Source: Rebecca billardiae RCC1528
Lineage: Eukaryota; Protista; Haptophyta
DNA: 64,000 nt
Assembly: GCA_965240325.2 (NCBI GenBank)
Contig: OZ251230.1
Location: 496,001 to 560,000, forward strand
Direction of reading: 5' to 3'
Below, piece by piece: positions 13,798-62,083 of the stretch (within the stretch, counting starts at the first letter, position 1; each line of letters begins with the position of its first letter). The position numbers and the translations under genes were made by a program. Below the pieces are notes generated by a model that saw nothing but the letters and a program-made list of their open reading frames with translations, made no database searches and was not told the DNA's origin.

Positions 13798-16132
13798 ATG
13801 CGGCTGTCAGCCGCGCTCCTCGCCCTCCTCGTCGCGCGCGCGAGCGCGCATCGGTCGTATCTGGCGGAGCTTCCGAACGCGGACAAGGTCCCAGGTGGCC
13901 CGGGCATCGGCCACACGCGCGCCGCCGGTGGTGGCGCGCGTAACGCGTTCGGTTCCGACTTTGCCGCGAGCGGGCACAAGTGGTCCCGCGCGCTCTGCAC
14001 GATGGACTCGGACGGCGATGGGAGGACGAACGGCCAGGAGCTCGGCGACCCAGAGTGCGTGTGGGAGCCGGGATTGGTCCCCCAATTCGATACCGGCATC
14101 ACACACCCCGGCGTGCACACGGCCGCGGATGACGCCCACGTCGCTGACTCGTGCGACGGATTCGCCCTCGCCAACGGCACGGCGAACGTGACGGTGGAGC
14201 TGCGCTTCCCGGCGTACGAGGTGCCGAGCAAAGGGACAACGTACGCCAAGTACGCCTTCAATGTGCGCGACGAGCTCGACGCGCTCTCCGTCGGCGCCGT
14301 GCGCGGCGTGCGCTTCGGCGTGCGATTTGAGCCGCTGGTCGAGCAGAGCGCCGTCGTGCACCACATGCTGCTGTGCGCGCCGTGCGCGCGCGGGCGGCGG
14401 GGCTCGGCCGCAGCACGCCCCGGGTGGGCGCGTGGATGGCTTCTCACTCAAAGCGCGCGCGCGCGCGCGCGTGGGCGCGCCCCCGCCCCGCGCGCCTCCT
14501 CCCGCGCTGTTTCAGCTACGGCTGTGACGACCTCCCCGCGCAGTTTGTGGACGCGCCGACACAGTCGGCCGACATGCCGTGCACGCGGCTCAGGTACGCG
14601 TGGGCGGTGGGCGGCGGCCCATTCTGCCTGCCCGACCGCGTGGGCATCCCCTTCGACGTCGACTCGGCCGAAGACGCATGGCACGTGCTCGAGATCCATT
14701 ACGACAACCCGCAGCGGCGCGCCGGGCTGCGCGACTCGTCCGGCGTGCGGCTGACGCTGGTGGACGACGGCGACGCGGGCGGTGCGTACGCGCGGGCGGG
14801 GTTCCTGTGGATAGGTGCGGCGCTGTCCAAGCTGCGCATCCCGCCCGGCCAGCGCGCGCACCACGTCGAGGCGCGCTGCGCATTCCCGCAGCTGCGCGCG
14901 GAGACGCGCGTGACCGCGTTCGCCTCCATGCTGCACGCGCACACGCTCGGACGCGCCGTGTGGACGGAGGTGCACCGCGCGCACGGCGGCGGGCACGCGT
15001 ACGCGCACGACGCCGGCTGCTCGATGGCGTACGACTTTGACCTGCAGGAGATGGTGCCGCTGCCCGCCCCCGTCAGCCTGGGCCCGTCGGACACGCTGGT
15101 GGCCAACTGCGTCTACGACTCGAGCGCCCGCTCGGACGTGACGCGTGGCGGCGACGAGACAGCGGACGAGATGTGCCTCACGTTCCTGCTGTACTACCCC
15201 GAGGTGCAGGTGTGCGTCGCATCGGCGGCCCGAGGCGCCCCCAGCCGCGCTCGGCACGCGCCGCGCACCCGGAGGCCTCACCCAGTCCGCATGCCGGGCT
15301 GGCGCCGCCCGCCGCCCGCCGCCCGCCGCCCTCCGCCCTCCCGCAGGGCGAGGAGACCGTGTGCTGGGCGGCGCCCGTCGAGGTGCGCGGCCCGTCCGCC
15401 GCGAGCCACGCGTGCTGCCCGCTGCTCGCCAACGGCGAGGTGGCGTGCGACGCGGAGCCAGGCGCGCGCGCGCCACCGCCGGCGTGGCTGTACGCGCACG
15501 CCGCCGCGATGACCGTGGCGTGGGGCGCGCTCGCGCCGTGTGGGGTTGGCGCGGCGATGCAGCCGCTCCGCCGGCGGCTGGGCGCTAGCCGATGGCTGGG
15601 CGTGCATCGCGGGCTTCAGCTCGGCACGCTTGCCCTCACTCTGCTCGGCGGCGTGCTCGCGATCGCGCGCAGCGGCGGCGGGCGGCCAAGCGGCGCGCAC
15701 GCGCTGCTCGGCATCGCCGTGTGCGCGCTCACCCTCGCGCAGGCGCTGGGCGGGCTGTGCCGCCCGGCAAAGCCCGGGGGAGCGCCCGCGCCCGAGGCGG
15801 CGACAGGCCACGGTGAGTGCGCGCGCGCGGACGCCGGCGGTGAGGGCATCACGCCGACGACAGCTCGCGCCGCGCCATCCGGCGGCAAGGCGCGAGCTCG
15901 AGTCTGGTGGGCGCGCGTGCACCGCGCGTGCGGCGTGGCGCTACTGCTGGCCGCCCTCGCCAACATTGCGCTGGGCGGCGTCGAGGCGTGGCGGTGGTAC
16001 GCGCCTCCGAGCCGGCTGGGGCGGCTGTGGCTCTGGCTTCCGTTCGCGGCGGCGCTGCTGGGCGTCTCAGTGGCGCTGCTGGGCGTGACAGGGTTGTGCG
16101 TGCGGGATGTGCGTGGTCGTCGTGTCTCGTGA
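13798..16132 (+). CDS. Signal peptide + temptin-like domain + copper type II ascorbate-dependent monooxygenase + C-terminal cytochrome b561; introns 14373-14515 and 15210-15346
   Basis: [20 protein letters not shown]...THPG; Cu ligands VHHM, EIHY, LHAH, DEMC; four TM His (YAHAAAM, VHRGLQ, AHALLG, VHRACG). Confidence 0.85.
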
Positions 16133-16400
16133 CTCACGCGCGAGCAGCAGCGCTGACGAGCGTGATGAGCGCATATTATTTATATATATATATATAAGGA
16201 CGTGCGCCGCCCATTCCCCATATATATCTGTATCCGCTGTCGTCGCCGTGATCGGTCGTGACCGGGTAGTGATTCGGTGATGCGTGCAGTACGGCCGCGG
16301 TATCTGATGCGCGGTAGTGCAGTCTCTGTGACAAGTGTCTGCGACAGCATGAGCAAGTATGTGCGCTCGCAGATATTTACTTGTCGTCGTCGTTATTGCC

Positions 16401-17464
<1,064 letters not shown>

Positions 17465-33939: not shown

Positions 33940-34518
<579 letters not shown>

Positions 34519-34941
34519 GGTCTGAGGTCTCGCCGGGCTGCTGTGAGTGACCTGTGACAGCTCGGTAAGTCGCGATTATTCCGTCGCGGTTCGAGCTCCG
34601 CGGCCGCGCCGACTGCGCCGAGCGCGCGCGGGCGCGGCCGCCAGCTCGGCCCGGCCACCCGCAAGTGACAGTCTCGTACTCGTAATCGATCTGGCTTAGA
34701 GAGTACTCAGTAGCCTGCTGCCGCAGCCGCCCGCTGGCAGGCCTGCAGTCGCATCGTCATTAGGTGCCGCCGTGCCGCACACATGCCAGTCACGTCACCG
34801 CGAGCATATATATATGAGCAGTGGCACCAATTTGACCTGATGCAATGATGCCCAATGCCGGCTACCAGTATGTATGCCGCCGCCTTCAGGCTGACAAGTA
34901 GCGGCCTTACTTACAGTACGCGAGTAAGAAGGCGGCGGACG

Positions 34942-39362: not shown

Positions 39363-41168
39363 ATGCCGCGCGAACGCGACTACCTCGCGACCTACGTGCG
39401 GACCGTGTGGCTGGCGCACCACGTGGCGCAGTGGAGCGCGCCGCTCCACGCGCACGCCGAGGCCGAGGCGTGGTTTCTGCCGCTCGTCCTCCTCACCGCG
39501 TGCGCGCCGTCGACGCGGCTCGTGCTGCTGACCGTGTCGGCGCATGTCGTGCTCCGGCTGGCGCGGGCGCCATTCGTGTGGGAGTCTGACATATGGGCGT
39601 GCTTCCTGGACATGTCCTTCATCTTCTCCGCCCTGCGCGCCCTCGCGCGCGCGCGTGCGCGCTCCTCCAAGCGCTTCCCGCGGCTGAGTGTCGCGGAGCG
39701 CAACACGCTGATGCTCGACTGCGCGGGGATGGTGCAGCTGCAGCTGGCGATCTTCTACGCGGCCTCCGCCTTCTGGAAGCTGAACACGGCGTTTCTCGAT
39801 GTGCGCACGAGCTGCGCGCCCATCTTCACCGCGCAGCTGCTCTCGCGCGCGCGCGCGCTCGCGCCCGCCGCTCTCGACGGCGTGCTCGCAGCCGCCGAGC
39901 CCGGGATGCGCGCGCTCGTGGCGTCGTCGCCGCACTCGACGGTGCTGGTGGAGCTGGCGATCCCGGCGCTACTCCTCGTGGGCTTCCGCCGCCCCGCCGC
40001 CCGGCGCGCCGCCATCCAGCTCGCCCTCGCCTTCCACCTGCTCGTCGCGCTCACGCCTCCGCCCAACAGCGCCACCGACTTCTCCGTGCTCGCGGCGAAG
40101 TACTTGTTCTTCGCGTGCGCCGAGTCGGCGACGGTGGTGCGCGCCGAGGCGGGCGAGGCGCTCGAGTGGGCGCACCGCACGCGCGGCGCGCCGCTCCGCG
40201 CCGCCGCCGCGCTCGCCTTCGTCGCGGCGGCGCTCGCGGCGGGCATTCGGCGCGCGGAGGCGCTCGGCGGCGTCGGCGCGGACTCGACTGACGGCATGAG
40301 CGCGCGCAGCCTGCGCGAGCTCGTGGGCGGCGTGCTCGGCGGCTCGGTGGACTGGTGCGTGCCGATCTTCGCGGCGCAGCTGCTGCTGCTCTGGCCCGCC
40401 GCCGCGCGCGTGAGCGACCACGCCCACCCGTGCCCGCAGCTCGTGCCGCGCGCGACCAAGGGCGTGCAGCTGCTGCTCGCGTGCGCGTACGCGTTCGGCC
40501 TGCCCGCCCTCGGGCTGCAGGACGGGATGGCCACCAACATGTTCTCCAACCTCAAGGTGCACGGCGGCTCGAACCACCTGCTCGTGCCCACCGGGCTGCT
40601 CCTCGACGAGCGCGACGGCGGCGGGCCGCTCGGCGGCGGCATCGTGCGCGTGCTCGGCACGACCTCGCCGCTCCTCGCGACGCTCTTCCCGGCCGAGCAC
40701 TCCAGCACGATCGACGAGGGCGCGCGCGCGCTGCTGCACGCGGTCGGCCACTCGGGGCGCGAGTGGTTCCCAAAGCTCGGGCTGGTGCTCGGCGAGGCGG
40801 GGTACCCGCCCACGCCCGCCCCGCCCGCCGACGAGCAGACCCCGTACACCGTGCCCGCCGTCGAGCTGCGCCGCATGATCGCGCTCGCGCGCGCGCACGA
40901 GGCTCGGTTCTCGATCGAGTACACGCGGCTGCCCGGCACGCGCGGCGACGAGCGGTGGCGCGCGACGGCGGGCGGCGCGGTGGTGCGGTACTACGAGGAC
41001 GTGGAGAAGGGGTTCGTCTCGTGCCTCGTCACGGGCCGCGGGCTGTGCGAGCCCGACGAGGTCGCGCTGCAGCCCGCGCCCCCCGCGTGGGCGCGCAAGC
41101 TGCTGCTCTTCTCGCCGCACCCGATCATCGACGACGGCGCGTGGGGCGAGGTGCACTGCTTCGGCTGA
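39363..41168 (+). CDS. Multi-TM HTTM-like membrane protein
   Basis: YAASAFWKLNTAFLD..SCA, VELAIPALL, AFHL, MFSNLKVHGGSNHLLVP; many hydrophobic helices. Confidence 0.65.
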   Translation: MPRERDYLATYVRTVWLAHHVAQWSAPLHAHAEAEAWFLPLVLLTACAPSTRLVLLTVSAHVVLRLARAPFVWESDIWACFLDMSFIFSALRALARARARSSKRFPRLSVAERNTLMLDCAGMVQLQLAIFYAASAFWKLNTAFLDVRTSCAPIFTAQLLSRARALAPAALDGVLAAAEPGMRALVASSPHSTVLVELAIPALLLVGFRRPAARRAAIQLALAFHLLVALTPPPNSATDFSVLAAKYLFFACAESATVVRAEAGEALEWAHRTRGAPLRAAAALAFVAAALAAGIRRAEALGGVGADSTDGMSARSLRELVGGVLGGSVDWCVPIFAAQLLLLWPAAARVSDHAHPCPQLVPRATKGVQLLLACAYAFGLPALGLQDGMATNMFSNLKVHGGSNHLLVPTGLLLDERDGGGPLGGGIVRVLGTTSPLLATLFPAEHSSTIDEGARALLHAVGHSGREWFPKLGLVLGEAGYPPTPAPPADEQTPYTVPAVELRRMIALARAHEARFSIEYTRLPGTRGDERWRATAGGAVVRYYEDVEKGFVSCLVTGRGLCEPDEVALQPAPPAWARKLLLFSPHPIIDDGAWGEVHCFG

Positions 41169-41994
41169 GGCTACAGCGGCGCGGGAACTAGCAGGTAGGA
41201 TAGGGGGGTGCTGCGAGCGCGGCCGGCTGAGCGCGCCGTATCGCGGGCGCGCTTCGCGGCGGGCGTGCGCCCCCACCGCCGCGTGGACGGGCGGCACGGC
41301 GGTCGGTGCTGCCCGAGCTGGCCGGCGCTCGGGCGCGGTTCGAGTGAGCGCGCGCGCAACTGCGCCGTCCGCGCTGGCACCGCGGAGCACCTTGGGGGCG
41401 CATTGGTCAGCCGACGGCCCAGCCGATCAAGGGGATCGAGCAAGAGGATCGAGCAAGAGCATCGGCGGGCCTCTTGTGCTCAAGGGCTGAAGCGCGGGCC
41501 GCGACTTCGTCCGCCATATCTTTCCGCTCGCGCGCTCTGCGATGCAGCCGATGAGGCATGAGCCGCTCGTCTCGCCGGCCAGGCGCGTTACCGCGTAGCG
41601 GCCCGGCGGGCGCCGGGGCGCGCACTTTTTCCCTCGGCGAAATCATGTGTACCGTCCGGCCAGTCAAATTGATGAGCGATGAATACAGCCTCTAATTCGA
41701 CTGCGCAATTCACGCCGACACCGGACACGCCACGGGTATGGACCCGAGTTTCTGCTACCCATATTACCTTCATAGGGGAAATGTTTTCTATAGGGATTTT
41801 TGGCCCTGTCGGCCGTAGCGATGGTAACACCCCGGTCACCCGCCCGCGCAGGCACGCGAGGGACTGCGGCTCGACAGCGCGCGCGTCAGGCGCGCGCGCG
41901 CGGCGGCGGCCGCGCGGCGGCGCGCCGCATCGCCGCCGTGACGCCGTCGGCGTCCTGAGTCAGCGGCGTGGTCGGTCCGCGGCGGCACTCCTGG

Positions 41995-43190
41995 GCCGGC
42001 GGGCCCGGGCCTCGCGGCCCGGGAGGAGGCCCCCTGTAACAGCTGTAACACCGTAACACGTAACAAGTCCGGCTCGTCCCGGAGTCCGGGGCTGCCGGCG
42101 GGCCGGCCGCGCCGGGCCCGGGAGGAGGCCCCCTGTAACAGCTGTAACACCGTAACACGTAACAAGTCCGGCGCGTCCGGGTCCGGGGCTGCCGGCGGGC
42201 CCGGGCCTCGCGGCCCGGGAGGAGGCCCCCTGTAACAGCTGTAACACCTGTAACACGTAACAAGTCCGGCTCGTCCCGGAGTCCGGGGCTGCCGGCGGGC
42301 CGGCCGCGCCGGGCCCGGGAGGAGGCCCCCTGTAACAGCTGTAACACCGTAACACGTAACAAGTCCGGCGCGTCCGGGTCCGGGGCTGCCGGCGGGCCCG
42401 GGCCTCGCGGCCCGGGAGGAGGCCCCCTGTAACAGCTGTAACACCTGTAACACGTAACAAGTCCGGCTCGTCCCGGAGTCCGGGGCTGCCGGCGGGCCGG
42501 CCGCGCCGGGCCCGGGAGGAGGCCCCCCGTGTAACAGCTGTAACACCTGTAACACGTAACAAGTCCGGCGCGTCCGGGTCCGGGGCTGCCGGCGGGCCCG
42601 GGCCTCGCGGCCCGGGAGGAGGCCCCCTGTAACAGCTGTAACACCTGTAACACGTAACAAGTCCGGCTCGTCCCGGAGTCCGGGGCTGCCGGCGGGCCGG
42701 CCGCGCCGGGCCCGGGAGGAGGCCCCCTGTAACAGCTGTAACACCTGTAACACGTAACAAGTCCGGCGCGTCCGGGTCCGGGGCTGCCGGCGGGCCCGGG
42801 CCTCGCGGCCCGGGAGGAGGCCCCCTGTAACAGCTGTAACACCGTAACACGTAACAAGTCCGGCTCGTCCGAGTCCGGGGCTGCCGGCGGGCCCGGGCCG
42901 CGCTGGCCGGGCCTGCCGCGGGAGGAGGCCCCCTGTAACAGACAGCTGTAACACCGTAACACGACGTAACAAGTCCGGCGCGGCGAGTCCGGGAGCCGGC
43001 CGGGCCGGGGCCGGGGCGGGCGGGCCGCCGGGCCCGGGAGGAGGCCCCCTGTAACAGCTGTAACACCGTAACACGTAACAAGTCCGGCGCGGCGAGTCCG
43101 GGAGCCGACCGGTCCAGGTCCGGGGCGGGCGGGCCGCCGGGCCCGGGAGGAGGCCCCCTGTTACAGCTGTAACACCGTAACACGTAACAC
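41995..43190 (+). repeat. Tandem array of 12 ~100-bp units (alternating A/B dimer), each with four GTAACA-type motifs
   Basis: Core GGAGGAGGCCCCCTGTAACAGCTGTAACACC(T)GTAACACGTAACAA at ~42022, 42121, 42218, 42318, 42415, 42515, 42614, 42715, 42813, 42921, 43037, 43146. Confidence 0.97.
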
Positions 43191-43458
43191 AATGGCGCCG
43201 CTCGGCCATGGCCCGTCGTCGGCCCGGTGAAAAAATGGCGGCGGGGCGCGCGGCGCGCAGCGTCGCGCTCGGTGCGCTCGGCGGGGCTCGAGGAACGCCC
43301 GCGGACGGGCGAGCGCGCACGGGCGCGAGCACGAGTCGCGTCGCCCGCGCCCCTCCCCGAGCGACCTGCCGCCGCGTCTCGCGACGATGGCGGTGTGGAC
43401 GCTCGTCCGTGGCCGCGTGAAAAAATGGCGGCGGGGCGCGCGGCGCGCAGCGTCGCGC
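43033..43458 (+). repeat. Left arm of ~430-bp inverted repeat
   Basis: Near-identical reverse complement of 44941-45369. Confidence 0.95.
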
Positions 43459-43720
43459 TCGGTGCGCTCGGCGGGGCTCGAGGAGCGCACGCGGACGGGC
43501 GAGCGCGCACGGGCGCGAGCACCGCGGCGGTTCGCGTGGCGTCGCGCTGCACCGACCCCGGCGCGAGCGCCGAGTCCTTGTTTGCACGCCGCCTCGTTTG
43601 CCGAGCCCGTCGGCCGACGGCGCGAGGTGGGCGCGGCGGCGGCGGCGGCGGCGGCGGGGCGGCGGCGGCGGCGACGGCGGCGGCGTGCGGGCGCATGCGC
43701 GCTGCACGGCCGCCGCGTCG

Positions 43721-44974
43721 TCAACGCGCCGGGCCCATCGCGGCACGGCCGCTGGCGAACGCGGCGTGGAAGCGCGAGGCAAACTCGGCGCTGCGTGGCG
43801 GCGCGCCCGCGCGGCCGCCGCCCGCGCAGAAGAGCATGCTGCGCAGGCAGACGGCGCGCGCGCGCCCGGCGCCGCGCGCTGCCACGCACGCCTCGTCGGC
43901 GCAGCACAGGTCGAGGCCGTCGGACTTGGCGAAGTAGAAGACGGTGCGTCGCGCGTGCTCGGCGCCCTTGCACTCGCACCACCTGCTGGCGGTCGAGCAC
44001 GTCGCGACCGGGCCGTGCGCCGTGCTCCCAGCAAACACCTGCACGATGCGCGGCCAGCGCTCGGCCGAGCCAGAGACTCGTGCGTGCGCGTGCAGCTGCT
44101 CGTTGAGCCAGCCGACCAGCGCCGCGCGCCGCGCGCCGGCCGCCGCATCGCGACCGGCGGCGCTCGTCGCCGGCACAGCCGGTCGGCCGGGCGCGGGCGG
44201 CGGCGCGCTCCACTCGACCAGCTCGGTGCGCAGCCGCGCGCGAGAGAGCCAGCGCGCGCCATCCGCCGCGAGCCGCCGCAGCGCGTGCTGCGCAGGCAGC
44301 GCGTCGAGCCACGCGCAGCGCACGGCGCCGTGCTCGTCGGCGGCGACGACGGCCGCCGGCAGGTAGGGCGGGCCGCCGTCCGACTTGGCCGTGAACGGCA
44401 GGCGCAGGCCCGCCCCGTAGATGCTGCAGTCGATCTCGAGCTTGTGCCAGCACGGCGGCCGCGGCTGCGAGCGCGCCCAGTCGTGCAGGACGCGCGCGAT
44501 GCGCGCCGCCTCAGCGGCCGAGACGATGGCCGAGTCGTTCCATGTCGCGTGAATCCCGGCTCGGCGCACGCCCGGCGCCGAGCCGGCGGCGGTCGCGGGG
44601 CTGGGCGCGCGCGCCGAGACGTACACGACGCGCCCAGCCACGGGAACGGGCACGGGCAGATGCTCCTCCGCGACGCGGTAGAGGCCGACGAGCAGTGCGG
44701 CCACGTCCGAGGGGGAGGGCGCGGTGCTGAAGGCGCAGTCCACATCGACGACGAAGCGCGCGCGCGCGCCGAGCGCCTCGACCACCATGGGCGCGCGCGC
44801 GCCGTGCACCAAGTGCTGCGCGGCCACGAGTGCATCGAGCTCGCGCAGGCGGCTGCTCGGCACGTGCAGCCGGCCGCCGAACGTACGCTGCGAGCCACTT
44901 GCCAGGAACACAACCTCGTGCGTGCACGCCTCGCCTGGGCGCGCGACGCTGCGCGACGCGCGCCCCGCCGCCAT
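43721..44974 (-). CDS. Viral-type archaeo-eukaryotic primase/PrimPol with C-terminal Zn finger (NCLDV A468R-like), 417 aa, intronless
   Basis: TH..GGRLHVP...VVE...RFVVDVD (motif I), GIHATW (motif II), IDCSIYGAGLRLPFTAK (motif III), SRWCECKGAEH..VFY...CCADEAC (C-H-C-C finger). Confidence 0.8.
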   Translation of the reverse strand: MAAGRASRSVARPGEACTHEVVFLASGSQRTFGGRLHVPSSRLRELDALVAAQHLVHGARAPMVVEALGARARFVVDVDCAFSTAPSPSDVAALLVGLYRVAEEHLPVPVPVAGRVVYVSARAPSPATAAGSAPGVRRAGIHATWNDSAIVSAAEAARIARVLHDWARSQPRPPCWHKLEIDCSIYGAGLRLPFTAKSDGGPPYLPAAVVAADEHGAVRCAWLDALPAQHALRRLAADGARWLSRARLRTELVEWSAPPPAPGRPAVPATSAAGRDAAAGARRAALVGWLNEQLHAHARVSGSAERWPRIVQVFAGSTAHGPVATCSTASRWCECKGAEHARRTVFYFAKSDGLDLCCADEACVAARGAGRARAVCLRSMLFCAGGGRAGAPPRSAEFASRFHAAFASGRAAMGPAR

Positions 44975-45369
44975 TTTTTCACGCGGCCACGGACGAGCGG
45001 CCACTGCGCCATCGTCGCGAGACGCGGCGGCAGGTCGCTCGGGGAGGGGCGCGGGCGACGCGACTCGTGCTCGCGCCCGTGCGCGCTCGCCCGTCCGCAG
45101 TCGTTCCTCGAGCCCCGCCGAGCGCACCGAGCGCGACGCTGCGCGCCGCGCGCCCCGCCGCCATTTTTTCACCGGGCCGACGGGCCGCGGCCGAGCGGCG
45201 CCATTGTGTTACGTGTTACGGTGTTACAGCTGTAACAGGGGGCCTCCTCCCGGGCCCGGCCCGGGCGGCCCGCCCGCCCCGGACCTGGACCGGTCGGCTC
45301 CCGGACTCGCCGCGCCGGACTTGTTACGTGTTACGGTGTTACAGCTGTTACAGGGGGCCTCCTCCCGGG
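44941..45369 (-). repeat. Right arm of the inverted repeat; contains two array units and the primase start codon
   Basis: Reverse complement of 43033-43458. Confidence 0.95.
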
Positions 45370-46602
45370 GCCCAGCGAAACCCGCCCGGCCCCGGCCCCG
45401 GACCCGGACTGGCCGGCAACGGGCCGCGAGAATCCGAGACCGACGGTCTCAAGTGAAAGTGATGGCTGACAGTGTGCTCAGCCAGGGTTTAGTCAGGCGG
45501 CGTGGCTCGGTCAGACACCCGCAGTCCGGGTGAGTCCGGCGTGAGAGTGTTACATGTTACTGCTACGCTCGGCCTGTAACACTTTTCACGGGCGCGACGG
45601 GGGTGAGTAATAGTTAGAGGAATTGTTACCCGGGAGAAACTGGGGTCCTTGGTCCACGCCACGGCCCCGAGTCGTCGACGTCGTCGCTGCAGCTCAGCAG
45701 CTGGCCGAGCCTCCTGCATCGCCGTCGTGATCCTCCGGCTCCGGATCGGGGCATCGCCATCGGCGGGCCGCATCCTATTCCTCATCCTGATCCGGCGACG
45801 ATCCTCCGCGCCACTTACAGTCACGTCTCATGCTGATCGGTCTTGATTCTTGCCCGGCACGGCCGGGACTGAAGTAAACTGGCCGCTAGCCACAGCTAGG
45901 CACAGATGACTCAGAAGGCACCCCGAGTGACTCTAGTTAGTGAGGTCATCCGAGCCCGAAGCAAAGGCAAGAGGCTAAGAGGGCCGCCGTGACTGTCCGC
46001 CGGGCCGCTTACACTTTACAGTACTCGAGTCTGTCGAGAGTAGTACGCGGGCACCCGCCCGACCCGCCCGTCACTAACTACTAAGGCGGCGCGGCCTCTC
46101 CGGCCCACCAGAGGCCGGTCCAGAGCGTAAAGTTGCCATCCGGCCGAGGCCGCCGTGCTGGTCAGGATCAGATTCAGTGGGGCACTCTGCATGAACGGCC
46201 TTGAGGCGGTTGAGCCAAGTTGAGCTGCCGCTTGCGCGAGTGTGAGCAGTGTCGCAGTGTCATCAACAGTAAGTTCTTGAGTACCCGGAACTGTCCGGAC
46301 CGGGAGGTCCGGCAGCGGTAAAATGTGCTCTGTCCTCTCCGGACTGTGACATGTCCTCGATCGCTTTGCAAACTGTCCGCCAGCCCTCCCGGCCTCCCCG
46401 AGATCGACCTTGGTGCGGAGCACGCCCGCGTCCGCGTCCGCGCCGCGCCTCGCTGCGCTGCGCCGCGTGCGGCAGTGGGCGCGCCGAGCCGCTTGGCACG
46501 GAGCGGACGCTGATGTGCGCGCGCCGCGCGCCCGGTGCGCTCGCTCCCCCCGCCGCTCCGCCCACGCGCAGCTCGCCGGCACGCTGCCCGTCCCCGATCC
46601 CC

Positions 46603-47601
46603 ATGGCCCTCGTCAACTTGCCCACGTCGATCGCGCCACCGAACGTCCACACCGAAGATGGCATGCTTCGCCTCGTCAAAAGGACGCGCACCACGCTCGC
46701 CGATAGCAAGCCCTCGACCCTGCCCGAGGCCGTGCTCGACATGGTGTTCAACGTCCTCAAGGCGACCGCGGCTGACGACTGGCCGACGGTCCAGGAGTTC
46801 GCGCACGGTACAGGCGACGAGCCGAAGGACGTGCTCATCAAGATGGTGGAGAAGAAGCTCGTTCAGGGCGAGCACTTTGTCGGCGGCGAGATCAAGGTGC
46901 GCAAGGACGGGCGCCCCGTGTCCCTGAAGAAGAACCGCGACAACCTCTCGCTCAAGCTGACCGCCAAGGGGCTGAACGTCCTCGCTCCGCTCATGCCGGG
47001 CTCAGACGGGCGCGACTACTCCGACTTCATGTTCAAGGTCGTGAGCACCTTCATGCAGTACCGCTCGGAGATGATCCAGGCCGCCGCCGACTACGAGTCC
47101 GACCGCAAGGTCGAGCGCGCGAAGCGGACTGCGGAGTGGGGCAAGCGCAAGGACATCATCCAGGGAGCCATGCTCGGCACGGCGCCCGACGAGGACGTCG
47201 AGAGGGCTTCTCGCGGCATCTGCCTCGTGCAGGACAAGAAGATCTACAGCGCGATCGTTCCAAAGTCGACCTCGGCCACGGCGGCCATCAGGCGCGTCGC
47301 GGGCTACGGCCACCACGCGAGAGTCGCAAACGTGTCGCAGTACCTCACGCCCCTCGGCCAGCTCGCGGCTGGGCTGAGCATCGGCTTGCAGGCAGCCGTC
47401 GTGCAGGTGCACGCGGATGAGATCGCCGCCGAGCCAACGCTCGAGGCTCGCAAGCGCAAGATCTCTGACGTCGTCACGGGCCGCATCCAGAAGATCGCTG
47501 ACGACGAGATGTTCAAGGTGTCGGACGATCCCGCAGTGCAGGAGCGCCACTTCTTCTCGCCGCCAGCCGATCGTCCAGCGGCGCGCCGCCGGATCCGATG
47601 A
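46603..47601 (+). CDS. 332-aa intronless protein with AntA/AntB-antirepressor or MSV199-like DNA-binding region plus coiled coil
   Basis: KLVQGEHF...KDGRP...LKLTAKGLNVLA...GRDYSDFMFKV resembles the f.eg.Df..GRP..lT....g...r.Yf pattern; Lys/Asp-rich, unlike host genes. Confidence 0.55.
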   Translation: MALVNLPTSIAPPNVHTEDGMLRLVKRTRTTLADSKPSTLPEAVLDMVFNVLKATAADDWPTVQEFAHGTGDEPKDVLIKMVEKKLVQGEHFVGGEIKVRKDGRPVSLKKNRDNLSLKLTAKGLNVLAPLMPGSDGRDYSDFMFKVVSTFMQYRSEMIQAAADYESDRKVERAKRTAEWGKRKDIIQGAMLGTAPDEDVERASRGICLVQDKKIYSAIVPKSTSATAAIRRVAGYGHHARVANVSQYLTPLGQLAAGLSIGLQAAVVQVHADEIAAEPTLEARKRKISDVVTGRIQKIADDEMFKVSDDPAVQERHFFSPPADRPAARRRIR

Positions 47602-48319
47602 GGGCCGAAGACCATGATACCGAGGCACTCGCTCTTGCCGCTCGGCACGCTGGATCGGCTGGTGTGCCGCCGCCACGGCGCGGGGCGCCGGCGTGGAGGG
47701 GGGGGGACAAACAACTTATATTGGACATCGGACGGGCGCCGCACGATGGCGTCGCGGCGCCATCGTAGGCACCAGCCTCTGCCAGCTGCCTGACACTCGG
47801 TCACCAAAAACCGCCTGTCCGCCGCCTCGATCACCCGCCGGTCCGCGGCTGCCGCCGGACATCACGGCCCGTAGTCAGGCGTCTATGGATCATCCATCGT
47901 AGGCTTCAGTCCGGCGCGGGGCCTCGCTGATCGCCTGATCGGCCGCCGCGCGCGCAGAGCCGGGACTGCGGGTGCCCGCGGAGCCGGAGGGCAGCTGGCA
48001 GCGCCGAGCGCCGCGGTCTCGGGCGGAAGCCCGGAGGGCTCATCAGACACTTATTCAGTAGTACGTAGGATCAGGCGACTATCGATCTACCGCCGTCTAC
48101 TGTGCCGTCGATCCACCGGCCGTCGTTGCCGCGCGCCCGTTGTCGCGTTGATGATTTGAGTAGGACGATGAATGATGATGGCGGACGTTCTACTACTGAG
48201 GAGTCAGAAGCCGAAGGACGAGTTCTGACGATCACGAAGGTGCCGCCAGCCTAAGCGCCACTTAGCCTACTGCGCTAGGCTTCACTGGCACTCGGCAGCT
48301 CCTGGGCGGCTAGCGGCCG

Positions 48320-60601: not shown

Positions 60602-61049
60602 CGAGCTCGGGAGCGCACCGTGTGCTGCGTAGGGTGCACATCTCCTTGGCCGTCGTTCCTGGCCCGCCGGCCGCCGCATGGTCCGAATATGACCACTACT
60701 ACCACGCGACGACCGGCGGCGAGTGGCGGCGTGCTGTGTCTGTAGTTACTGTGAGATCGTAACTACCGGGTAGCACCTGGTCTGGCAACTGCGGCTGCAG
60801 CCTGCGGCTCGGGCGCAGCCGACGCCGCGCGCCGCTGCTGGCAATCTATATAATCGCGAGCCCCGCTCGCATTGGTTGTTCTGTAAGAACAAGCATGCGA
60901 GCGGAGCGAGTTTTCCGGTAGGACACGCGAAGTCCGGTGATTCTTACAAAGTTGATGGCCTTCCAATAGGTATCCCGAGGAATACAGTTTAGTCAGATCC
61001 CAATTGGGGCCAACGGTTTTTCGTGCAATCTGTCAGCAGTCGACTCCCC

Positions 61050-61578
<529 letters not shown>

Positions 61579-62083
61579 CAACAGCAAGAGATGTGATGAT
61601 GATGATTCAAAGGTCGGATGACCCCTCCTCGGCTCCTCTACCAATCTCCTCTCTGATTCGGTCTCGTCTCACAAGCGGCATCAAATGAATTCCGGTCAAG
61701 GGCTGCCTTGGTACGGTACAGTTTACTAAGAATAAGAGACAGTATCGCTTACATGTACTGGGCACCAACTGAACCGATGATGAACAGCTGCTGATGATGA
61801 ACACACGGAAGCCGATGAATCATGAAAGGCGAAAGCGACTAATAAGCGAGCCTCCCCAAGGGTGGTTGCTCAGGGTCGCCGACTCCAGCGGAGTCCGGTC
61901 CCCGTATGCTTCCGGTTCCTCCCGGTTGCTTGGAAACCGGTCAACATGAGCAAGGACCAGTGATGAAGGTGCTTTACACTGCTTTCAGCTTCCTCTCGGT
62001 TGCTTCCGGTTCCTCACGGTTCGGCAAGAGAGCAAGGACCCGTGACTAGGTGCTTCAGCTTCGTCCTCCGTTGCTCGCTCCCT

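Follow-up and report, generated by a model that had tools for sequence, protein, structure and literature searches.

A candidate mobile cassette with a giant-virus-type primase as its only gene in the haptophyte Rebecca billardiae

I analysed a stretch of 64,000 nucleotides from the genome of the haptophyte Rebecca billardiae RCC1528 (GenBank assembly GCA_965240325.2, contig OZ251230.1, positions 496,001 to 560,000 of the forward strand), hereafter called the window. It was found that a segment of this stretch, 41736-45654, is missing from another allele of the same locus, and that it has an intact gene for a stand-alone archaeo-eukaryotic primase (AEP) set among inverted repeat modules. It is likely that the segment is an insertion, and the cassette is a real, discrete unit that was probably inserted recently. 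In the best reading, it belongs to a small element family whose sole gene is a giant-virus-type AEP primase-polymerase. The element is thus presented here as a candidate for a hitherto undescribed type of mobile element, and its self-copying and mode of movement are put forward as a proposal. The features are collected in Table 1.

The allele without the segment is L006, a public 6.6-kb short-read contig of the run ERR14847148, which was reached via ORF2 (P0007), an open reading frame (ORF) to the right of the segment. Positions 1-1024 of L006 correspond to window 40712-41735 at 100% identity, and the contig then continues with window 45655 onward at 99.9%. What is absent from L006 is therefore exactly 41736-45654, comprising the tandem array, both inverted arms, and the primase gene. 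Over 5.6 kb, four substitutions and a 9-bp indel, which is a difference in tandem copies, set L006 apart from the window. It is therefore derived from another haplotype or strain and did not arise by collapse of the assembly. A 411-aa RING protein of the host is exactly identical in ERR14847148 and ERR14847151; thus, both runs come from the species of the window. An earlier note on this DNA, made from the letters alone, had suggested that the element is recent or active and had proposed a search for empty sites. Such a site is now in hand, with a 10-bp direct repeat at the junctions of the filled allele, and it supports a discrete and probably recent unit.

The 10-bp repeat occurs once in L006 and once at each junction in the window, and nowhere else in the window. 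It is a candidate target-site duplication with a matching empty site. Its length lies within the 8-10 bp range of Mutator-like elements (MULEs), and it documents one event. Outside the arrays, the segment has about 260-280 bp of unique sequence at its ends. A near-terminal inverted match of 13/14 nucleotides (41740-41753 versus 45636-45649) lies 4 and 6 nucleotides inside the boundaries. Its score was equalled or beaten in 12 of 5000 shuffles and in 207 of 5000 random pairs of window positions. A 7-mer is common to the left end of the element and the host flank. When the unique ends were compared with the related loci by short-word BLAST, only GC-rich noise was obtained. The hexamer composition, the self-contained gene, and the presence of relatives at other loci indicate that the segment is foreign to its surroundings. 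Two further observations concern the ends. The unique ends of the element are lower in GC than the surroundings. Just to the right of the insertion site, the 9-mer ACGGSCCCG stands twice in tandem in L006 (1025-1038) and once in the filled allele (window 45665-45669); this copy difference could be a footprint, a feature of the target, or an unrelated slippage polymorphism.

The primase ORF is uninterrupted for 417 codons from its ATG, as the earlier note had described. Its codon-position GC is host-like, with a third-position value (GC3) of 0.89. AEPs have three catalytic motifs, namely an acidic DxD (motif I), xH (motif II), and D (motif III). All three are present and conserved in the primase ORF and in the aligned relatives. 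The ORF has VVE at 64-66, FVVDVD at 74-79, GIHATW at 140-145, and D182...Y186G..GLRLP...K197, followed by a C-terminal cluster of Cys and His residues (333/335, 340, 358/359, and 364), so that the motif order given beforehand is confirmed. The residues D77, D79, G140, H142, D182, Y186, G189, R191, K197, C333, H340, and C358 are invariant across the full-length members. Very long alternative-frame or antisense ORFs of up to 1058 aa overlap the element, at 41836-45012 on the minus strand and at 43598-45235 on the plus strand. These were treated as spurious, because their codon-position GC is that of non-coding frames in GC-rich DNA.

The evidence supports the assignment of the ORF to the giant-virus/herpesvirus PrimPol-UL52 branch of AEPs by transitive homology and by predicted fold, and a primase-polymerase activity is predicted. 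A direct Pfam search of the ORF returned only a sub-threshold DUF7739 match and no AEP_C962R or Herpes_UL52 match. A PHROG search gave nothing usable, and searches of the PDB by sequence and by profile were empty. The link is provided by the relatives. P0005 (27.8 bits) and P0006 (43.2 bits) pass the Pfam AEP_C962R (PF23162) cut-off of 23 bits, and P0005 matches the primase ORF with an E-value of 2.6e-9. When the GC-rich group was aligned with the group from virus-like contigs using hhalign, the probability was 95.6% and the E-value 1.2e-8. As for the Cys/His cluster, C333, H340, and C358 are the invariant residues, and the Pfam Herpes_UL52 matches in the relatives stay below the cut-off (E-values of 0.0031 and 0.096). 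An AlphaFold2 (AF2) model, built from an alignment of seven sequences, has a moderate pLDDT of 59. In Foldseek searches of PDB and BFVD with this model, the top matches were almost all the UL52 primase of herpes simplex virus (HSV), the N-terminal domain of the PrimPol of African swine fever virus (ASFV), and AEPs of giant viruses, with probabilities of 0.96-1.0 and TM scores of about 0.3-0.5. The viral AEPs named among them are those of medusavirus, Feldmannia virus, clandestinovirus, pithoviruses, and mimivirus relatives. No match with the name A468R was returned; the viral matches are unnamed entries and the named AEPs above. There is no cellular PrimPol among the 50 PDB fold matches listed. 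The earlier placement of the ORF in the PrimPol-UL52 branch is thus borne out by the two relatives that pass AEP_C962R, by the intact motifs, and by the viral AEP fold matches.

The repeats of the element are built from modules. A module of the array consists of a GC-rich frame with four GTAACA hexamers and a tail of the form AAGTCCGG...GTCCGGG. The array unit is about 100 bp in length, with a higher-order unit of 197 bp, and there are 12 modules on the left side and two on the right. There are 18 occurrences of the 19-nucleotide core of the unit, whereas shuffles give an expectation of 0.00. Of GTAACA or its complement TGTTAC, the element has 61 copies, and the remaining 60 kb of the window have two. 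Two adjacent 197-bp units, 42053-42249 and 42250-42446, are 100% identical. This implies that the array was expanded or homogenised very recently. In addition, the innermost unit of each arm (43158-43176 and 45220-45238) was seen to have a perfect 16-nucleotide palindrome, TGTTACAGCTGTAACA, in place of the direct hexamer pair, owing to a change of one base. The direct form of the pair is found in 10 of the 11 other left-side units and in the outer right unit.

The two long inverted arms, described beforehand as near-identical and about 430 bp in length, are indeed so: their cores (43030-43458 and 44941-45372) are 97-98% complementary, and 446 of 470 columns match in a gapped alignment of 43000-43458 with 44941-45407. 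The continuation of the left arm as a tandem array was likewise seen, with 12 units in 41995-43189. The right arm contains the upstream/promoter region of the primase gene and the first 34 nucleotides of the ORF. The left arm is an inverted duplicate of this 5′ region, aimed at the 3′ end of the gene. Each arm consists of two array units and two 190-bp units with a start-codon motif, which occurs four times in all, twice per arm. Thus, the arms duplicate the 5′ region of the gene. The arms flank the gene, as had been stated, and the right arm also overlaps the start of the ORF, so that the gene is not strictly confined to the space between them. The view that the arms enclose the element had to be abandoned. 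As termini of the element they are ruled out, because both lie inside the insertion, about 260-280 bp from its ends.

Is the primase found elsewhere with such modules? Hardly any members of the family are in present-day databases: when 1.84 billion representative proteins were scanned exhaustively with HMMER, only six relatives came up. A word-indexed protein search found one homologue, and its repetition with a profile added none, as low-complexity words swamp the candidates. Scans of IMG/VR with the protein, with the profile, and with two DNA motifs revealed no relatives. In the contig collection, no gene on record has the exact primase product. The methyltransferase of the window also has no exact match there, for which allelic substitution is the probable reason. 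The related loci were judged by tblastn, from counts only. Among the six, only L001 has a gene that is full-length in one frame, and the paralogue in the same species (L004) has a disrupted frame. Since most members are truncated or frame-disrupted, they seem to be selfish or neutral DNA and not a maintained host gene.

The module also stands next to the AEP gene in L004, in L002/L016, and in L008, with the same frame and a different short iterated motif. These AEP genes, from the same species and from others, are 32-49% identical to that of the window. The shared frame has a GC-rich head of the GGCC(C/T)CC type, three or four short iterated motifs, and a tail of the (A)AGTCCGG...GTCCGGG type. 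The iterated motif differs from locus to locus, being GTAACA in the window and other 7-9-mers elsewhere. Modules upstream of the gene have the orientation of the gene (the right arm of the window, L004, and L002/L016). The sole module seen downstream in the other loci, that of L008, is inverted, as in the left arm of the window. If this comparison holds, the gene and the repeats share a line of descent, along which the recognised motif changed. In other samples, GC-rich AEP genes were seen to be flanked by strongly AT-rich DNA (L016 50-290 and L009 770-1282), and AT-richer termini may be a feature of the family. The first 24 nucleotides of L002 are presumably a remnant of a sequencing adapter and its first bases are probably not biological.

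More distant relatives in metagenomes are stand-alone ORFs of 330-400 aa and are 20-31% identical to the primase ORF. Their surroundings are giant-virus-like, as the contigs also have genes for a capping enzyme, TFIIS, NUDIX, and DUF5832. On contigs from marine metagenomes, the AEP gene was found directly downstream of a NUDIX gene (L010 393-2248 and L012 751-2567), and it lies near a DUF5832 gene in L010 and L013 (13-3096). This looks like a conserved micro-synteny in giant-virus-like genomes.

Table 1. Features of the element and its surroundings (window coordinates) and the related loci
Feature	Position	Strand	Description
Inserted segment (element)	41736-45654		3919 bp; absent from the empty allele L006
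Left 10-bp direct repeat (candidate target-site duplication)	41726-41735		Exact 10-mer, twice in the window, once in L006
Left unique end	41736-41994		Holds the inverted 14-nt match 41740-41753 and a lower-GC stretch
Tandem array, 12 modules	41995-43189	+	TRF period 100/197, score 1819
Left arm of the long inverted repeat	43000-43458	+	Two modules and 190-bp units; directed towards the 3′ end of the primase gene
Two direct copies of the 190-bp unit, left side	43211-43522	+	Carry the start-codon motif; the ORFs opened have 61 and 171 codons
Region past the primase stop codon	43523-43720	-	GCG microsatellite at 43633-43718
Stand-alone AEP primase-polymerase gene, intact	43721-44974	-	417 aa; C-terminal Cys/His cluster; GC3 0.89
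Right arm of the long inverted repeat	44941-45407	-	First 34 nt of the gene, two 190-bp units, two modules; all in gene orientation
Right unique end	45408-45654		GC about 0.62; holds the inverted 14-nt match 45636-45649
Right 10-bp direct repeat	45655-45664		Second of the two window occurrences
ORF2 (P0007)	46513-47601	+	362 aa; outside the element; present in the empty allele L006
Related locus L001 (P0001)			Metagenome; full-length, one frame
Related loci L002 / L016 (P0002 / P0011)			Two runs, 96.5% mutual identity; one frame, N-terminal catalytic half absent
Related locus L004 (P0005)			Species of the window; one frame switch
Related locus L008 (P0003)			ERR14847149, adjacent run number; two frame switches
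Related locus L009 (P0004)			Logan run SRR28961174; one frame switch

The window has a GC content of about 69%, and its genes, with very high third-position GC, are an ordinary eukaryotic set. Domain matches include an inward-rectifier channel, RCC1, RING, a UCH protease, an ABC1 kinase, WD40, a class-3 lipase, Tubby, and an NOL1/NSUN-type methyltransferase, together with a weak PsbQ-like match. The window is part of a protist or alga-like nuclear genome; a bacterial origin is ruled out by the eukaryotic domains throughout. The flanks of the insertion are eukaryotic genes as well (NOL1/NSUN-type methyltransferase, WD40, UCH, ABC1, RING, and RCC1). With host genes on both sides and one viral-type gene, the locus does not show the cluster of several hallmark genes that defines an endogenous giant-virus region. 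No tRNAs and no Rfam families were found in the window. Elsewhere in the window there are low-GC islands (0.45-0.58) at 16067-17375, 34012-34756, and 60956-61637, which have a flat codon-position GC and no Pfam matches. These islands may consist of non-coding DNA or of further repeats or elements.

ORF2 was also considered as a component of the element. The earlier note had reported a second, non-host-like ORF at 46603. The ORF exists, at 46513-47601, and its codon-position GC is in fact host-like (GC3 0.85). Since the inserted segment does not include it and the empty allele has it too, ORF2 is a neighbour of the element and is ruled out as a component of it. It has no Pfam match and one weak PHROG match (E-value of 0.03), and its AF2 model has a low confidence (pLDDT 46). 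The only homologue found, P0008 (L007 2821-3822), is 38% identical, which makes a two-member family. P0008 adjoins a reverse-transcriptase fragment on L007, a GC-rich eukaryotic metagenome contig, and the similarity between L007 and the window is limited to the coding part, 46627-47559.

How might the cassette work? I consider the chances about even that 41736-45654 is a cassette which is mobile, or was so until recently, and whose AEP primase works together with the inverted repeat modules as a functional pair. In this reading, the promoter and the start of the primase gene would come from the 190-bp unit. The clustered GTAACA hexamers in the inverted modules would be the cis-acting sites of the element itself. 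The primase or a partner protein may recognise these hexamers and start DNA synthesis there, by which the cassette would be copied. Because the cassette encodes no integrase, chromosomal integration, leaving the 10-bp duplication, would depend on a transposase or on the break repair of the host, acting in trans. A bolder version of the proposal is unlikely. It holds that the cassette represents a new class of eukaryotic mobile element, in which a sole AEP recognises lineage-specific repeats in its own inverted modules and primes the copying, so that motif and primase co-evolve as an initiator-origin pair. Such elements would derive from giant viruses or parasitise them, and would persist in GC-rich protist genomes.

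Several points weigh against the proposal of a self-copying cassette. The terminal inverted match is short, is offset from the ends, and is reached by 4% of the random pairs in this GC-rich window. The shared 7-mer and the adjacent 9-bp indel allow a microhomology-mediated insertion or deletion. There is one documented insertion event. The cassette is without an integrase, a transposase, or a helicase. The ORF itself has no direct Pfam match or PDB sequence match, and its AF2 model is only of moderate quality (pLDDT 59). The comparison of modules across loci was made with short motifs and an alignment of five sequences, without a formal statistic. Moreover, an origin (iteron) function of the repeats is conjectural, as the same architecture of clustered subterminal repeats is equally typical of transposase binding sites (PMC3573991).

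The last point leads to the main rival explanation, namely a non-autonomous cut-and-paste transposon of the Foldback or Mutator-like type. The primase gene would then be cargo captured in the style of a Pack-MULE, with no part in propagation, and the hexamer arrays would bind a transposase encoded elsewhere. In its favour, the element encodes no transposase. MULEs have a duplication of 8-10 bp, which includes the length found here, and they also have long terminal inverted repeats (TIRs) (PMC5225508). The inverted repeats of Galileo/Foldback elements are long and internally repetitive, have unequal numbers of tandem copies, and carry transposase binding sites (PMC3573991). I nevertheless regard this explanation as unlikely. 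AEP genes that are 32-49% identical keep the same kind of module, which speaks for a long co-descent of gene and repeats over a recent capture. In addition, the element does not end with the long arms, its terminal match is weak, and no MULE transposase was seen among the ORFs scanned in the 64 kb. It was also noted in advance that no transposase, capsid, helicase, or DNA polymerase B (PolB) is visible, and neither these nor an integrase were found in the element or among the scanned ORFs of the window. The lack of an integrase beside a single viral-type gene would also suit a fragment of a DNA virus or satellite, either a giant virus or a small helper-dependent replicon, which was endogenised in a single event, by capture at a chromosome break, and is immobile. 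The nearest recognisable relatives are those in the giant-virus-like contigs, and the junction microhomology and the 9-bp indel fit a repair-mediated capture. This seems quite unlikely, however. A host-like GC3 of 0.89 in a young, polymorphic insertion fits a long-resident lineage better, there is a disrupted paralogue in the same species, and IMG/VR has no match by protein or by repeat motif.

The host-like codon usage and the intact ORF with its conserved motifs could also be those of an ordinary host gene, acquired from a giant virus long ago and now domesticated, in a repeat-rich intergenic region. The empty allele would then be a microhomology-mediated deletion, which a 10-bp direct repeat can mediate as well. 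I hold this to be very unlikely in view of the presence/absence polymorphism within one species and the truncated or frame-disrupted state of most relatives. Furthermore, the hexamer composition is peculiar to the segment, the promoter/start region has an inverted duplicate that faces the 3′ end of the gene, and no likeness to a cellular PrimPol appeared among the PDB sequence or fold matches. Finally, the high similarity of the arms might suggest that the inverted repeat and the array are an assembly artefact, for example of chimeric fold-back long reads, and the filled allele is absent among the called genes of the public short-read assemblies. The arms differ in 24 of 470 columns, though, and are strongly asymmetric (12 versus 2 units), and the independent assembly L008 also has an inverted module downstream of the AEP gene. 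An artefact is thus extremely improbable.

To my knowledge, the known eukaryotic DNA elements move by means of a transposase, an integrase, a recombinase, or a Rep/helicase protein, and the self-synthesising ones use a protein-primed polymerase. If the proposal of a self-copying cassette is true, a small element reduced to a viral-type primase-polymerase and its own repeat modules, and seen as a presence/absence polymorphism, would be a new combination of replication modules in the eukaryotic mobilome. It would also be a link between the replication genes of giant viruses and host-resident selfish DNA. Even in the cautious reading, that of a transposon carrying a viral primase, the locus shows an intact giant-virus-type AEP on the move in the genome of a protist.

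How does the cassette compare with known systems? Among Nucleocytoviricota and herpesviruses, the AEP primases, whether stand-alone or fused (PF23162 with a UL52-type zinc finger), have the same order of motifs, DxD, G.H, and D..Y..GLR...K, followed by the Cys/His cluster. The relatives in a viral context are stand-alone proteins of 330-400 aa in giant-virus-like contigs, just as the ORF of the window is stand-alone. The latter departs from them in that host genes surround it on a cellular chromosome and in that its GC is very high. It also lacks a helicase domain, and it shares only 20-31% identity with the relatives in a viral context. A vertically inherited cellular PrimPol would have a fixed single-copy synteny, and what was found instead is a presence/absence polymorphism and a disrupted paralogue in the same species. 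Within the literature covered by a full-text search, no eukaryotic TIR element with an AEP as its sole gene is described.

Transpovirons, polinton-like viruses (PLVs), and virophage-like elements are small, are linked with giant viruses, have inverted repeats, and can integrate in protist genomes, and many PLVs have an AEP-type primase fused to a helicase, according to two accounts (PMC5499653, PMC4642659). In contrast to polintons, PLVs, virophages, and transpovirons, which are 7-40 kb in size, the element is 3.9 kb in length and has one gene, without a capsid, an ATPase, a protease, a protein-primed polymerase (pPolB), an SF1/SF3 helicase, or an integrase.

With the Foldback/Galileo and Mutator-like elements it shares long inverted repeats made of tandem subrepeats, unequal copy numbers on the two sides, a flanking duplication of 8-10 bp, and the existence of non-autonomous copies lacking a transposase (PMC3573991, PMC5225508). 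It differs from them in that its long repeats are internal, its only gene is for a primase and not for a DDE/THAP transposase, and its terminal match is a 13/14-nucleotide one that is offset from the ends. The working analogy is with the initiators of plasmids and viruses and their iteron origins. Although the protein of the window is an AEP and not of the Rep/HUH or RepA type, in both cases an initiator-type gene stands beside clustered short repeats, whose motif varies between lineages while the frame is kept.

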